From positions 124,001 to 188,000 of the forward strand of contig NIVC01000397.1 of assembly GCA_002269645.1 (NCBI GenBank): DNA of 64,000 nt. Reading direction: 5' to 3'. The notes under the pieces are model-generated. The model ran no database searches. It was not told the origin of the DNA and saw nothing but the letters and a program-made list of their open reading frames with translations. Both the position numbers and the translations under genes were made by a program. This DNA is from Macrostomum lignano. Taxonomy: Eukaryota. The first letter of the stretch is position 1, and each line of letters begins with the position of its first letter. This document shows, in pieces, positions 38,775 through 43,961 of the stretch.

Positions 38775-41700
38775 TCAGTAACGGAAGAAAATCTTCATGG
38801 CCAGATTTCCTTCGAGGTCCGGCGAAGTTTCCTCAATGATGTCCTCCTGTTTCTCCACCGGATATCCAGCAGATTCGCGTCCTGCGAACTGAAAATGAAT
38901 TGGTGAATTCATCGATAAATACTCATAGCTTGTGTTAACCTGCTGCGTGCGAATATTTCAGCCAAAATTAAATTCGTACCTTTCTCAGCGACTTTGAACT
39001 TTCTCCAGTTGCAGAAGTTTTTGCCGAATGTCTTTCGAAATAATCAGAATGTTCTTTGCTATGCGTCTTCCATCCGTGCTTATGCCTCTTAGTTCCATAT
39101 CCAGATTTATGTCCAGATTTATATCCAGATTTATGTCCAGATTTATGTCCAGATTTATATCCAGATTTATATCCAGATTTATGTCCAGATTTATATCCAG
39201 ATTTATGTCCAGATTTATGTCCAGATTTATGTCCAGATTTATGTCCAGATTTATATCCAGATTTATGTCCAGATTTATGTCCAGATTTATGTCCAGATTT
39301 ATGTCCAGATTTATATCCAGATTTATGTCCAGATTTATATCCAGATTTATGTCCAGATTTTGACGTTTTGCCGTTTTTGCTAATCTCTTTACCCGCTTTC
39401 TTTGCACCTTCTTCGACCCTCTTTGCGCCTTTCGTAAACTTCTTTTCGGCCTTCTTTGTGTCTTTCTTGACCTTCTTTCCGACTTTCTTTTTGCCTTTCT
39501 TCACCTTCTTTGCACCTTTCTTCACCTTCTTTCCGGCCTTCTTTGCACCTTTCTTCACCTTCTTTCCGGCCTTCTTTGCACCTTTCTTCACCTTCTTTGC
39601 ACCTTTCTTCACCTTCTTTCCGGTCTTCTTTGCACCTTTCTTCACCTTCTTTCCGGCCTTCTTTGCACCTTTCTTCACCTTCTTTCCGGCCTTCTTTGCA
39701 CCTTTCTTCACCTTCTTTCCGACTTTCTTTGCACCTTTCTTCGCCTTCTTTGCACCTTTCTTCACCTTCTTTCCGACTTTCTTTGCACCTTTCTTCACCT
39801 TCTTTGCACCTTTCTTCACCTTCTTTCCGGCCTTCTTTGCACCTTTCTTCACCTTCTTTCCGACTTTCTTTGCACCTTTCTTCACCTTCTTTGCACCTTT
39901 CTTCACCTTCTTTCCGACTTTCTTTGCACCTTTCTTCACCTTCTTTGCACCTTTCTTCACCTTCTTTCCGGCCTTCTTTGCACCTTTCTTCACCTTCTTT
40001 CCGGTCTTCTTTGCACCTTTCTTCACCTTCTTTCCGGTCTTCTTTGCATCTTTCTTCACCTTCTTTGCACCTTTCTTCACCTTCTTTCCGGTCTTCTTTG
40101 CACCTTTCTTCACCTTCTTTCCGGTCTTCTTTGCACCTTTCTTCACCTTCTTTCCGGTCTTCTTTGCACCTTTCTTCACCTTCTTTGCACCTTTCTTCAC
40201 CTTCTTTCCGGTCTTCTTTGCACCTTTCTTCACCTTCTTTCCGGTCTTCTTTGCACCTTTCTTCACCTTCCTTGCACCTTTCTTCACCTTCTTTCCGGTC
40301 TTCCTTGCACCTTTCTTCACCTTCTTTCCGGTCTTCTTTGCACCTTTCTTCACCTTCTTTCCGGCCTTCTTTGCACCTTTCTTCACCTTCTTTGCACCTT
40401 TCTTCACCTTCTTTCCGGTCTTCTTTGCACCTTTCTTCACCTTCTTTTCGGCCTTCTTTTTGCCTTTCTTCACTTTTTTTCCGGCCTTCTTTGCACCTTT
40501 CTTCACCTTTTTTCCGGCCTTCTTTGCACCTTTCTTCACCTTCTTTCCGGCCTTTTTTGCACCTTTCTTCACCTTCTTTGTACCTTTCTTCACCTTCTTT
40601 CCGGCCTTCTTTGCACCTTTCTTCACCTTCTTTCCGGTCTTCTTTGCACCTTTCTTCACCTTCTTTCCGGCCTTTTTTGCACCTTTCTTCACCTTCTTTC
40701 CGGCCTTCTTTGCACCTTTCTTCACCTTCTTTGCACCTTTCTTCACCTTCTTTGCACCTTTCTTCACCTTCTTTCCGGTCTTCTTTGCACCTTTCTTCAC
40801 CTTCTTTTCGGCCTTCTTTTTGCCTTTCTTCACCTTTTTTCCGGCCTTCTTTGCACCTTTCTTCACCTTCTTTCCGGCCTTCTTTGCACCTTTCTTCACC
40901 TTCTTTCCGACCTTCTTTTTGGCGCCCTTCTTGATCTTCTTGGCGCCTCTGCTAGCGCCGATGGATGCGGCAACGCCTTTCATTCTGTCTTTGCCAGTCT
41001 TGGAGCTGTAGGTGGGCGTGAGCAGTATGACTCCGCACACGCATTTCGGGCACATGGCCTGGCAGGCCCGGCGCAAGCTGTGCAGTCCGTTGCGGGACTT
41101 CTTGCGCCTGATCTGCTGCACCAAATCGGCCGCGGCGTCCGCGTTGTCCGCCTTGGCGAGCAGCTCCTCGATCCATGCGGACTTGGTCCGCTCTACCACT
41201 GGGTCCTCGGCTGGAGCCTCTGCGTCAGTGGCTTCCTGGCTGCTCAGGGCGCAGTTGATGCCTGTGGGGGTAGGGATATTAGTTTAAAGAGCGGAGTTAC
41301 TCAGTCAGTTAGTTAGTTAGTCAGTTAGTTAGTCAGTTAGTTAGTCAGTTAGTTAGTTAGTTAGTTAGTTAGCTAGTTAGTTAGTTAGTTAGTTAGTTAG
41401 TTAGTTAGTTAGTTAGTTAGTTAGTTAGTTAGTCAGTTAGTTAGTTAGTCAGTTAGTTGGTCAGTTAGTTAGTCAGTTAGTTAGTTAGTTAGTTAGTTAG
41501 CTAGTTAGTTAGTTAGTTAGTTAGTTAGTTAGTTAGTTAGTTAGTTAGTTAGTTAGTCAGTTAGTTGGTCAGTTAGTTAGTCAGTTAGTTAGTTAGTTAG
41601 TTAGTTAGTTAGTTAGTTAGTTAGTTAGTTAGTTAGTTAGTTAGCTAGTTAGTTAGTTAGTTAGTTAGTTAGTTAGTTAGTTAGTTAGTTAGTTAGTTAG

Positions 41701-43961
41701 TTAGTCAGTTAGTCAGTTAGTTAGTTAGTTAGTCAGTTAGTTAGTCAGTTAGTTAGTCAGTTAGTTAGTTAGTTAGTTAGTTAGTTAGTTAGTTAGTCAG
41801 TTAGTCAGTCAGTTAGTTAGTTAGTCAGTTAGTTACTTAGTTAGTCAGTTAGTTCGTCAGTTAGTTAGTCAGTTAGTTAGTCAGTCAGTCAGTCAGTCAG
41901 TTAATCAGTCAGTCAGTCAGTCAGTCTGTCTGTCTGTCTGTCTGTCTGTCTGTCTGTCTGTCTGTCTGTCTGTCTGTCTGTCTGTCTGTCTGTCTGTCTG
42001 TCTGTCTGTCTGTCTGTCTGTCTGTCAGTCAGTCAGTCAGTCAGTCAGTCAGTCAGTCAGTCAGTCAGTCAGTCAGTCAGTCAGTCAGTCAGTCAGTCAG
42101 TCAGTCAGTCAGTCAGTCAGTCAGTCAGTCAGTCAGTCAGTCAGTCAGTCAGTCAGTCAGTCAGTCAGTCAGTCAGTCAGTCAGTCAGTCAGTCAGTCAG
42201 TCAGTCAGTCAGTCAGTCAGTCAGTCAGTCAGTCAGTCAGTCAGTCAGTCAGTTAGTTAGTTAGTTAGTCAGTTAGTTAGTCAGTTAGTTAGTCAGTTAG
42301 TTAGTTAGTTAGTTAGTTAGTTAGTTAGTTAGTTAGTCAGTTAGTCAGTCAGTTAGTTAGTTAGTCAGTTAGTTACTTAGTTAGTCAGTTAGTTAGTCAG
42401 TTAGTTAGTCAGTTAGTTAGTCAGTCAGTCAGTCAGTCAGTTAATCAGTCAGTCAGTCAGTCAGTCAGTCTGTCTGTCTGTCTGTCTGTCTGTCTGTCTG
42501 TCTGTCTGTCTGTCTGTCTGTCAGTCAGTCAGTCAGTCAGTCAGTCAGTCAGTCAGTCAGTCAGTCAGTCAGTCAGTCAGTCAGTCAGTCAGTCAGTCAG
42601 TCAGTCAGTCAGTCAGTCAGTCAGTCAGTCAGTCAGTCAGTCAGTCAGTTAGTTAGTTAGTTAGTCAGTTAGTTAGTCAGTTAGTTAGTCAGTTAGTTAG
42701 TTAGTTAGTTAGTTAGTTAGTTAGTTAGTTAGTCAGTTAGTCAGTCAGTTAGTTAGTTAGTCAGTTAGTTACTTAGTTAGTCAGTTAGTTAGTCAGTTAG
42801 TTAGTCAGTTAGTTAGTCAGTCAGTCAGTCAGTCAGTTAATCAGTCAGTCAGTCAGTCAGTCAGTCTGTCTGTCTGTCTGTCTGTCTGTCTGTCTGTCTG
42901 TCTGTCAGTCAGTCAGTCAGTCAGTCAGTCAGTCAGTCAGTCAGTCAGTCAGTCAGTCAGTCAGTCAGTCAGTCAGTCAGTCAGTCAGTCAGTCAGTCAG
43001 TCAGTCAGTCAGTCAGTTACTCACTGGACGAACCATACGGGCACTTTCGTTGCGCAGCAGTTTCCTCTCCTCCTCTTTCCTCTTCGAAGACAGTGTTGAG
43101 CTCGCTAGAATCGGCCGCTCTACTTGACGAGTCATCGCTGTATGCCAGTCTGTTGAAGTCCGTCAACCTGTTTACATCTGTGAAAGATTATAAAAACGTT
43201 TTTGTGCATCGATTGTTGTAATAGCTTCACAGCTTTCAAACTATTTCGAGTCATATCATACGCGAATCTCACCTCTTCAAATCTCACCCCTACGAATCTC
43301 ACCCCTACGAATCTTACCCCTACGAATCTTACCCGTAGCTCGTACGAATCTCACCCGTACGAATCTCACCCCTACGAATCTCTCCTCTACGAATCTCACC
43401 CCTACGAATCTCGCCCGTACGAATCTCACCCCTACGAATCTCTCCTCTACGAATCTCTCCTCTACGAATCTCACCCCTATGACTCTCCCCACTACGAATC
43501 TCACCCATACGAATCTCACCCATACGAATCTCTCCTCTACGAATCTCACCCCTACGAATCTCGCCCGTACGAATCTCACCCCTACGAATCTCTCCTCTAC
43601 GAATCTCTCCTCTACGAATCTCACCCCTATGACTCTCCCCACTACGAATCTCACCCATACGAATCTCACCCATACGAATCTCTCCTCTACGAATCTCACC
43701 CCTACGAATCTCGCCCGTACGAATCTCACCCCTACGAATCTCGCCTTTACGAATCTCTTCTATAACAATATTTTTAGTCTTTTTTTGTTTCGGTGCTGCT
43801 GAATAAAATGAACATAAAAATGAAATACTGTGGTACTCACTAATCTCAGGACTCAGCACTGACTCACCATCGCTGGTTGGCAACCCGACAGTCAGCCGGC
43901 ATGCCAACAGAGCAATCAGCGGTATCAGCCAAACCAATCTTATTGACCGCCTTGCTGACAT
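38775..43961 (-). CDS. Predicted secreted, extremely lysine-rich repetitive protein (about 880 aa), 4 exons
   Basis: Exon 1 43961-43868 (MSARRSIRLVWLIPLIALLACRLTVGLPTSD, signal-peptide-like), exon 2 43177-43025 (acidic), exon 3 41261-38980 (Cys cluster, KKGAKKAGKKV repeats, KSGH/KSGY repeats), exon 4 38888-38775 (acidic, FAGRESAGYPVEKQEDIIEETSPDLEGNLAMKIFFRY*). Phases 1/1/0 all fit canonical GT-AG. Without the last intron the ORF stops at 38968. Confidence 0.8.
41300..43017. repeat. Compound (TTAG)/(TCAG)/(TCTG) microsatellite filling intron 2 of the lysine-rich gene
   Basis: Direct reading, with three higher-order blocks. Confidence 0.95.
43260..43760. repeat. 15-bp minisatellite with a higher-order duplication (intron 1 of the lysine-rich gene)
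   Basis: Unit TACGAATCTCACCCC. Confidence 0.9.

Follow-up and report, generated by a model that had tools for sequence, protein, structure and literature searches.

A predicted four-exon gene for a putatively secreted poly-lysine protein in Macrostomum lignano, with a single relative sharing a four-cysteine domain

Positively charged protein regions rich in lysine and arginine (K/R) are central to temporary adhesion in flatworms (PMC6410801, PMC6745481, PMC9229212). For example, two-thirds of Mlig-ap1, the cohesive glue protein of Macrostomum lignano, consist of Lys/Arg-rich repeats, and in this species attachment is blocked by heparin and release by cations (PMC6410801). Minona and Theama secrete the cationic part as a protein of its own, ap3, which forms the dense core of the vesicle and has been proposed to bind Kringle domains of the anchor cell; K, R, G, H and S together account for 87.7% of the Theama protein, Tmed-ap3 (PMC6745481, PMC9229212). 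In M. lignano a Kringle homologue is specific to anchor cells, and it has been speculated in the literature that the KR regions of ap1 derive from an independent KR-rich protein. Here we analyse a stretch of 64,000 nucleotides (nt) from M. lignano contig NIVC01000397.1 (the window, to which all coordinates refer), in which an earlier reading of the bare letters (the original prediction) had placed an orphan secreted poly-lysine protein. The locus appears to be a genuine four-exon gene, correctly modelled, with one splice junction independently backed and two predicted; its product of 880 amino acids (aa), the poly-Lys protein, forms with one homologue a tiny, previously undescribed and lineage-restricted family that has no characterised member.

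The four exons splice in phase as originally proposed: 94 + 153 + 2282 + 114 nt give a coding sequence of 2643 nt, a multiple of three, that translates into 880 aa, with GT..AG splice sites at all introns and pyrimidine-rich tracts in front of the acceptors. The elements of the gene are the following (a slash marks an exon boundary):

Exon 1, 43868..43961, minus strand: 94 nt, containing the ATG (43959-43961) and the signal peptide MSARRSIRLVWLIPLIALLACRLTVG...; phase 1 at the donor, G/GTGAGT.
Intron 1, 43178..43867, minus strand: 690 nt, largely taken up by a 15-bp minisatellite (43263-43757), which reads as an open frame, (GEIRR)n.
Exon 2, 43025..43177, minus strand: 153 nt, acidic and Ser/Asp/Glu-rich, DVNRLTDFNRLAYSDD...KCPYGSSS; donor CCA/GTGAGT.
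Intron 2, 41262..43024, minus strand: 1763 nt, near-wholly (TGAC)n/(TAAC)n/(AGAC)n microsatellite; every frame contains stops.
Exon 3, 38980..41261, minus strand: 2282 nt; after the last part of the acidic stretch come the conserved domain, Lys repeats, KSG[HY] repeats and a His/Ser-rich end.
Conserved 60-aa helical domain, 41017..41196, minus strand: VERTKSAWIEELLAKADNADAAADLVQQIRRKKSRNGLHSLRRACQAMCPKCVCGVILLT, with the Cys pattern C-x4-C-x2-C-x-C.
Lys-repeat region, 39469..40932, minus strand: residues 193-680.
KSGH/KSGY block, 39100..39360, minus strand: 12-bp repeat (AAATCTGGACAT/TAT), 21.8 copies.
Intron 3, 38889..38979, minus strand: 91 nt, from AAG/GTACGA to TTCATTTTCAG; predicted junction.
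Exon 4, 38775..38888, minus strand: 114 nt, a mildly acidic 37-aa tail, FAGRESAGYPVEKQEDIIEETSPDLEGNLAMKIFFRY, followed by the TGA at 38775-38777.

The microsatellite of intron 2 has a period of 4 and 429 copies (41301-43017), which fall into roughly three blocks of higher order. Exon 3 has no in-frame ATG 5' of the conserved domain and intron 2 has stops in every frame, so that exon 3 needs upstream coding exons. Were intron 3 left unspliced, the protein would stop four codons further on (..KVRI). The spliced frame is intact across 2.6 kb, about 900 nt of which are non-repetitive. Minisatellites occupy both flanks of the gene (38100-38685 and 44940-45797); a 30/87-bp array begins about 90 bp past the stop codon, and about 1 kb 5' of the ATG there is a 41-bp array in 20 copies.

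Exon 2 is found in both UniProt models of M. lignano that match the locus, and both are 100% identical to the window on the exons. A word-indexed search with the N-terminal 195 aa returned A0A1I8JRP0 (P0001, 'CG11148') as its sole match and missed the other model as well as the homologue described below; an exhaustive search also recovered A0A1I8FRH6 (P0002, 'Secreted protein', 84 aa). The latter is identical (100%) to residues 1-83. It splices exon 1 to exon 2 precisely where the gene model does, which supports this junction independently, and then reads past the exon 2 donor into ..SSSE and a stop. That the public models end at exon 2 is most likely due to the microsatellite in intron 2 and to indels in the older assembly. 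A0A1I8JRP0 involves a neighbouring gene:

Upstream gene, 45812-45962, 49014-49553 and 50651-50794, minus strand: the last visible exon is a transmembrane helix (ILNVIFISLGVVFLLGVIVVIVY).

The model joins the upstream segments 50794-50651, 49553-49014 and 45962-45883 to exon 2. It is frameshifted against the window at two or more places, and its donor, CAAC/GTGATC, is weak; in the window, exon 45962-45812 reads DKRIDDDQLEQIQDLQLPLLRKILNVIFISLGVVFLLGVIVVIVYTNL, a transmembrane helix in a frame other than that of the model, and can terminate six codons beyond 45812. In view of the two frameshifts and of an exon able to end by itself, we reject the fusion of the upstream gene to exon 2 and treat A0A1I8JRP0 as a probable artefact of an indel-rich earlier assembly. 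Exact look-ups gave no record for the 743-aa open reading frame (ORF), for either model or for a neighbouring ORF, and neither a paralogous or allelic locus nor an annotated entry for the window was recovered in this way.

An open frame is in itself a poor guide here. Mini- and microsatellites abound in the window and yield open frames of 150-650 aa on one strand or the other. Of the six frames of the Lys array no fewer than four are open, and its opposite strand is open for 651 aa; an open frame within the repeat alone is thus weak evidence of coding. The coding case depends on the conserved non-repetitive domain, which shares exon and frame with the repeats. When 1.84 billion representative proteins were scanned by HMMER with the N-terminal 195 aa, only three matched: the two models above and P0003, a complete, uninterrupted ORF of 277 aa on Logan contigs of 923 nt (SRR28338164) and 908 nt (SRR28338163). 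P0003 aligns to residues 97-173 (E = 1.3e-14, exhaustive HMMER), and in a pairwise comparison the two proteins are 54% identical over 68 aa (E = 3e-22). Their common 60-aa domain ends ACxAMCPKCVCGVIL. Across its 60 codons the proportion of synonymous differences (pS) is 0.64 (dS about 1.4) and that of non-synonymous differences (pN) 0.30, and the dN/dS of about 0.26 indicates purifying selection on the protein sequence of the domain.

Short flanks resembling untranslated regions and the lack of an intron suggest that the P0003 contig is probably an mRNA. Its protein carries a signal peptide (core LLLLLLLAGLG), an acidic stretch (net -10), the common domain, a Lys/Pro-rich region of 88 aa (K 32%, P 25%, net +26) and an acidic tail (-9), and outside the domain it has no sequence similarity to the poly-Lys protein, the acidic tails included. 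The family is defined by the 60-aa domain and the order of the elements, with a freely evolving cationic region. The repeats of P0003 (KKPGKP, KPAKKP) are more reminiscent of the Pro-containing KR peptide (SRKPRRKNRKSRKP) in Mlig-ap1 than the repeats of the poly-Lys gene are.

AlphaFold2 folds the domain into four short helices (predicted local distance difference test, pLDDT, about 80). No described family could be attached to it: Pfam gave no match on the non-repetitive parts of the poly-Lys protein, a sequence search of PDB with the domain returned only spurious designed helical repeats, and Foldseek against PDB had no match at E <= 0.001, with generic small helical bundles only. A metagenome scan for the domain yielded 600 pattern matches of which 0 were confirmed, a word-indexed search with the domain alignment gave no match, and the C-terminal 200 aa drew only bacterial and environmental low-complexity matches. 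The literature contained no paper with KKGAKKV, KKGAKKAGKK, KSGHKSGY, CPKCVCG, A0A1I8JRP0, A0A1I8FRH6 or SRR28338163/SRR28338164. The protein is hence not an orphan in the strict sense, since it belongs to a two-member family with P0003, although its lineage restriction and lack of characterisation stand; likewise, the homologue search with the N-terminal region that had been suggested for it brings up one true relative, itself uncharacterised.

The layout originally described, that is, signal peptide, acidic stretch, Cys motifs, Lys repeats, KSGH/KSGY repeats and acidic tail, is reproduced in full from the sequence. The N-terminus, MSARRSIR-LVWLIPLIALLA-CRLTVG, combines a charged n-region with a hydrophobic core (Kyte-Doolittle 2.86 over 11 residues), and no second segment of membrane-span strength occurs in the 880 aa (maximum 19-residue mean 1.24), which argues for a soluble protein. 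Judged by its own signal peptide, by that of P0003 and by the lack of any other hydrophobic segment, the poly-Lys protein is probably secreted. The exclusion of a histone-H1-like identity, which had been drawn from the upstream exons, is borne out by A0A1I8FRH6, in which the signal exon is joined to exon 2, and by P0003, which carries the whole layout on one ORF. The protein is also, as had been stated, not ap1: Pfam finds no lectin, VWD, C8, TIL or EGF domain in the 880 aa. The Cys motifs are KCP, NC and RACQAMCPKCVCG.

The whole protein is 38% K, 14% G, 2.5% R, 19% A + V and 1.6% Tyr. In the mature form of about 853 aa, 346 K+R face 44 D+E, a net charge of +302. The acidic Ser/Asp/Glu-rich stretch (residues 28-125) has a net charge of -13 and the 37-aa exon-4 tail, preceded by the His/Ser-rich end, one of -4, against about +319 for the region between them. 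These acidic parts offset about 5% of the charge, so that packaging or storage would need a separate polyanion. The proposal that the acidic ends neutralise the protein during secretion fails for the poly-Lys protein and roughly fits the short P0003, where acidic flanks of -19 against +26 offset about 70% of the basic charge. Nor is 'propiece' an apt name for the acidic part, as no dibasic cleavage site after it is conserved between the two proteins: RRKKSR in the poly-Lys protein corresponds to QSRTSSSG in P0003.

The only strongly anionic repeat near the poly-Lys gene, which would need a polyanion partner, is a 24-bp minisatellite (46012-47976, minus strand, hence the same strand as the gene) situated between the exons of the upstream gene. 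Its open frame of 654 aa consists of acidic (S)EGN[CW]SDV(S/L) repeats; neither signal peptide nor start context was seen, and the frame is probably non-coding.

The Lys-repeat region had been described as about 500 aa of roughly half Lys. It measures 488 aa, with 55% Lys and 16% Gly, and is built from 49 units, namely 35 11-mers (consensus KKGAKK[ATV]GKKV), 13 7-mers (KKGAKKV) and a single 12-mer. Changes of repeat length keep the frame, as had been claimed: every unit is a multiple of 3 nt long, and the region is free of stops. The claim that substitutions fall mostly on the A/T/V positions likewise agrees with the count, 18 of the 25 non-synonymous differences among the 11-aa units being located at the A/T/V codon. 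The 270 Lys codons depart from the consensus only as AAG>AAA (11) or K>R (2, across both unit sizes). Repeat copies are non-independent events, however, and this codon variation is supportive evidence only. The residue block 701-810, which contains the KSG[HY] repeats, is of a different composition (K 26%, G 24%, S 22%, H 14%, Y 7%), and the GC content at third codon positions (GC3) of the KSGH/KSGY block is about 0.03.

A regular spacing of the basic residues distinguishes the Lys repeats. When a Lys/Arg indicator over residues 193-680 is Fourier-transformed, a sharp peak emerges at 99-100 degrees per residue; the moment at 99 degrees is 0.29 for the whole region compared with 0.30 locally, so that coherence is held across 488 aa. 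On an 11/3 wheel the six Lys of the 11-mer fall within one arc of 164 degrees, with G, A, V, A and G opposite, and a 7/2 wheel segregates the Lys of the 7-mer likewise; an 11-mer plus a 7-mer make 18 residues, or five alpha-helical turns. Such a placement of Lys within a single arc is obtained in 11 of the 462 arrangements of six Lys in 11 positions. With a periodicity of 99-100 degrees, a helix would bear Lys on one face, and AlphaFold2, given 150 aa of the repeat as a single sequence, returns one unbroken helix (pLDDT 94.5).

The same periodicity is visible to Pfam. On the real repeat the Senescence family scores 35.8 bits, ApoLp-III 28.1 and Apolipoprotein 17.6, whereas six composition-matched residue shuffles gave 0 matches. 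The Senescence matches (PF06911; cut-off 24.6 bits, scores of 26.8 to 35.8) lie wholly inside the tandem repeat, in two to three stretches, whereas a member of PF06911 should pass the gathering threshold across one single-copy domain of roughly 180 aa; ApoLp-III (PF07464; 28.1 against 36.3 bits) and Apolipoprotein A1/A4/E (PF01442; 17.6 against 90) fall below their gathering thresholds. Membership in the apolipoprotein families was rejected and membership in the Senescence family is not favoured, the matches being confined to the repeat with none outside it, and we read the matches to these amphipathic families as probably reflecting a shared periodicity and not homology.

The data described above show directly the structure of the gene, its family, that the domain is under purifying selection, the charge balance and the periodicity; every functional step that follows we infer, secretion and the helix transition included. 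We consider the chances about even that the poly-Lys protein is a secreted, soluble polycation (about 853 aa when mature, with a charge of about +300) with a polyanion-binding, cohesive or matrix role in a glandular secretion. Minisatellite repeats multiplying in frame would have enlarged its cationic region to 488 aa of units 11 or 7 residues long, with about 22 KSG[H/Y] units in addition. The free Lys repeats would be disordered. On contact with sulfated glycans, an anionic surface or a partner polyanion that screens their charge, they could adopt the form of a long amphipathic helix with all Lys on one face and Gly/Ala/Val/Thr on the other. The Cys domain would be a likely site of multimerisation or granule sorting, the Lys/Tyr/His-rich KSG[HY] block a plausible substrate of oxidative cross-linking, and storage would rely on a separate polyanion. 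The source may be adhesive or cement glands, rhabdites and mucus, or the eggshell; indeed, cement gland, rhabdite/mucus, eggshell and prostate could equally be the gland concerned. A far more specific scenario can be composed from the same elements. It supposes a new family of secreted polycations on a four-Cys helical domain not seen before, whose M. lignano member is an approximately 490-residue Lys-faced amphipathic helix changing from coil to helix on polyanions. This member could be the missing stand-alone equivalent of ap3 in the Macrostomum duo-gland adhesive, or else part of egg cement; its binding partner would be the glycocalyx or Kringle-type receptors of the anchor cell, from which the anionic releasing factor would displace it. 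Taken jointly, these assumptions are doubtful in our view.

Several observations weigh against the interpretation as a secreted helix-forming polycation. The junctions of exons 2/3 and 3/4 are predictions, neither protein library contains an M. lignano protein covering exon 3, and the gene is unannotated and its expression putative. The transmembrane exon 45962-45812 ends in phase 1 like exon 1 and could in principle splice to exon 2 as well, and the mRNA nature of the P0003 contig is deduced from its flanks and lack of an intron. As regards the helix, AlphaFold2 often over-calls helices on single low-complexity sequences, and a separate run gave the first 35 residues of the repeat as coil (pLDDT about 50); the apolar face (G/A/V/T) is weakly hydrophobic in a region with 16% Gly, and the Lys/Pro-rich region of P0003 cannot be helical, so that the helix design is not kept in the family. 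Finally, only ap1 and ap2 have been reported from the adhesive vesicles of macrostomids (PMC9229212).

Other explanations compete with this interpretation. The poly-Lys protein could be a reproductive secretion of the prostate or accessory glands, transferred or deposited at mating, with the partner's tract, sperm or plug-like material as its target and no part in body adhesion. M. lignano possesses dozens of prostate-limited transcripts, mostly without homologues, and 38 of 65 have signal peptides (PMC5977470); the fast turnover of the repeats, with only the 60-aa domain in common with P0003, would also fit fast-evolving reproductive genes. The sequence has no feature specific to seminal-fluid proteins, however, and a polycation with a Tyr/His/Lys block is more like structural material, so that we regard a reproductive role as unlikely. 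An antimicrobial or defence function, exerted either by the intact protein in a mucus coat or by cationic amphipathic peptides of KKGAKKV type cleaved from it, accounts for the sequence of signal peptide, anionic N-terminal part and strongly cationic region, and for the amphipathic alpha-helical periodicity of the repeat. Such a layout recalls heptad-designed cationic peptides and precursors with anionic propieces. Its apolar face of just Gly, Ala, Val and Thr gives a hydrophobic moment too low for typical membrane-lytic peptides, though, and the units follow each other without spacers or processing sites, each of them KK-rich; moreover, dibasic cleavage after the acidic part is not conserved (QSRTSSSG in P0003) and the cationic region of P0003 is Pro-rich. 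On balance a defence peptide seems improbable.

It is also conceivable that no functional full-length gene exists, exons 1 and 2 encoding a short secreted peptide and the Lys exon being an unexpressed or decaying copy with a minisatellite left open by chance, or the repeat being unreliably assembled. The public models do end at exon 2, no database protein extends over exon 3, and non-coding satellites with long open frames are numerous, the Lys array itself being open in at least four of six frames; M. lignano further carries redundant paralogues after genome duplication. Against this stand the purifying selection on the exon 3 domain as measured with P0003, an ORF intact over 2.6 kb that includes about 900 nt of non-repetitive sequence, and the synonymous bias in the Lys codons, while the end of the models at exon 2 most likely stems from the 1.7-kb microsatellite intron and the indels of the older assembly; a defunct locus is thus rather unlikely in our view. 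Least credible of all is a protein that is not secreted, be it an H1- or protamine-like chromatin protein or a membrane-anchored fusion with the upstream transmembrane gene as modelled in A0A1I8JRP0. The Lys/Ala/Gly/Val composition is indeed like that of H1 C-terminal tails, and that model joins upstream exons to exon 2, the upstream exon having the same phase 1 as exon 1. Yet Pfam detects no Linker_histone globular domain on the 880 aa, the single ORF of P0003 includes a classical signal peptide, and the fusion comes from indel-ridden sequence with the weak donor CAAC/GTGATC, in place of which the window has a transmembrane helix in another frame, in an exon that can end six codons after 45812; we would be very surprised to find either version correct.

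The remainder of the window contains further open frames. Open-frame tandem arrays (150-420 aa, in several frames), GC-rich or simple, are located at 51257-52587, 24093-24941, 20915-21621, 13110-13782 and 33300-34062, with products that include poly-Thr from (ACN)n and Tyr/Cys repeats; in view of so many, long ORFs are no proof of genes in the M. lignano genome. At 1641-4214 on the plus strand an ORF of 857 aa, very rich in Gln, Pro and Gly with RGG-like C-terminal repeats (GC 0.61, no Pfam match), is possibly an exon of a low-complexity RNA-binding or scaffold protein. A sub-threshold aldo/keto reductase (AKR) match at 9903-10301, minus strand (E = 8.9e-5, 22.1 bits against a cut-off of 24), likely marks one exon of an AKR or Kv-beta-like gene. 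An ATG-started ORF of 319 aa at 61086-62045, plus strand, is of retroelement Gag type by appearance, although Pfam gave no match for it. Next to each other at 57391-58944, minus strand, lie ORFs of 297 and 197 aa, likewise unmatched to any family; the contig collection has no entry for any of the three.

M. lignano is the main model of reversible bioadhesion, and in the current model cationic Lys/Arg repeats hold the glue until they are displaced by an anionic releasing factor. With only ap1 and ap2 known from macrostomids, a compact, easily cloned stand-alone gene for a putatively secreted poly-Lys protein of 880 aa is a direct candidate in this species. Its regular 11/7-residue Lys-faced repeat may also serve as a simple template for biomimetic polycations. 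Besides, assemblies and gene models break at a microsatellite intron of 1.7 kb and a coding minisatellite of 1.5 kb, and such genes are therefore missed by annotation. Should the gene turn out to be unexpressed or to encode an ordinary gland product, it would merely be a new lineage-specific secreted protein of low complexity.

Among known systems, the C-terminal domain of H1 and the protamine-like sperm nuclear basic proteins share the Lys/Ala/Gly/Val low complexity of the poly-Lys protein. Their regions are disordered when free and helical when bound to DNA, a polyanion. The poly-Lys protein differs by its signal peptide and by the lack of a winged-helix globular domain, and P0003 is secretory as well, which argues against a nuclear protein. 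Likeness to the mussel foot proteins (mfp-5), to Pc of the sandcastle worm and to quinone-tanned eggshell is found in KSG[HY], with Lys beside Tyr or His in a Gly/Ser context. Such a context is typical of tyrosinase-modified or cross-linked secreted materials, and marine cement and eggshell systems store the polycation with a separate polyanion. There is, however, no sequence homology to them, Tyr makes up just 1.6% of the poly-Lys protein, and cross-linking is a possibility suggested by the composition; in Theama footprints, 3,4-dihydroxyphenylalanine (DOPA) was not found (PMC9229212).

Proteins with 11-residue amphipathic repeats (apolipophorin-III, apolipoprotein A-I/E, the Senescence domain of spartin) agree with the poly-Lys repeat in their 11/3 periodicity and continuous polar face, and their conditional folding on a surface is likened to the transition proposed for it. 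Alpha-synuclein and the group-3 LEA proteins are further examples of this repeat type. The poly-Lys protein deviates from them all in a polar face of pure Lys devoid of acidic residues, in a very weakly hydrophobic apolar face and in its presumed extracellular location. Cationic proteins stored together with an anionic pro-region, such as eosinophil major basic protein and many precursors of antimicrobial peptides, display the same order of signal peptide, acidic part and basic part; here, by contrast, the acidic parts offset only about 5% of the charge and no cleavage site is conserved.

The closest known analogue, which the original prediction had overlooked, is in our judgement the stand-alone G/R/K-rich adhesive protein ap3 of other flatworms (Mile-ap3a/b of Minona ileanae and Tmed-ap3 of Theama mediterranea), together with the KR/GRK regions of Mlig-ap1. 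The likeness lies in an extremely cationic low-complexity repeat and, for the ap3 proteins, in a secreted product with a signal peptide at its start and the repeat as its bulk; the KSG[HY]-containing block of K, G, S, H and Y comes near their K/G/H/S flavour, while the main block is one of K, G, A and V. Searches with the N-terminal 195 aa and with the C-terminus revealed no sequence relationship to Mile-ap3, Tmed-ap3 or Mlig-ap1, the presence of the ap3 entries in the libraries being unconfirmed, and the poly-Lys protein is not demonstrably an ap3. It contains 2.5% Arg against about 24% in Tmed-ap3, it is far smaller (880 aa compared with 3700 for Tmed-ap3 and 5407 for Mlig-ap1), its repeat is alpha-helically phased, and it possesses an N-terminal Cys/helix domain whose sole relative in 1.84 billion proteins is P0003. 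The poly-Lys protein may thus work like the polycations of flatworm adhesion while belonging to a separate small family of its own.

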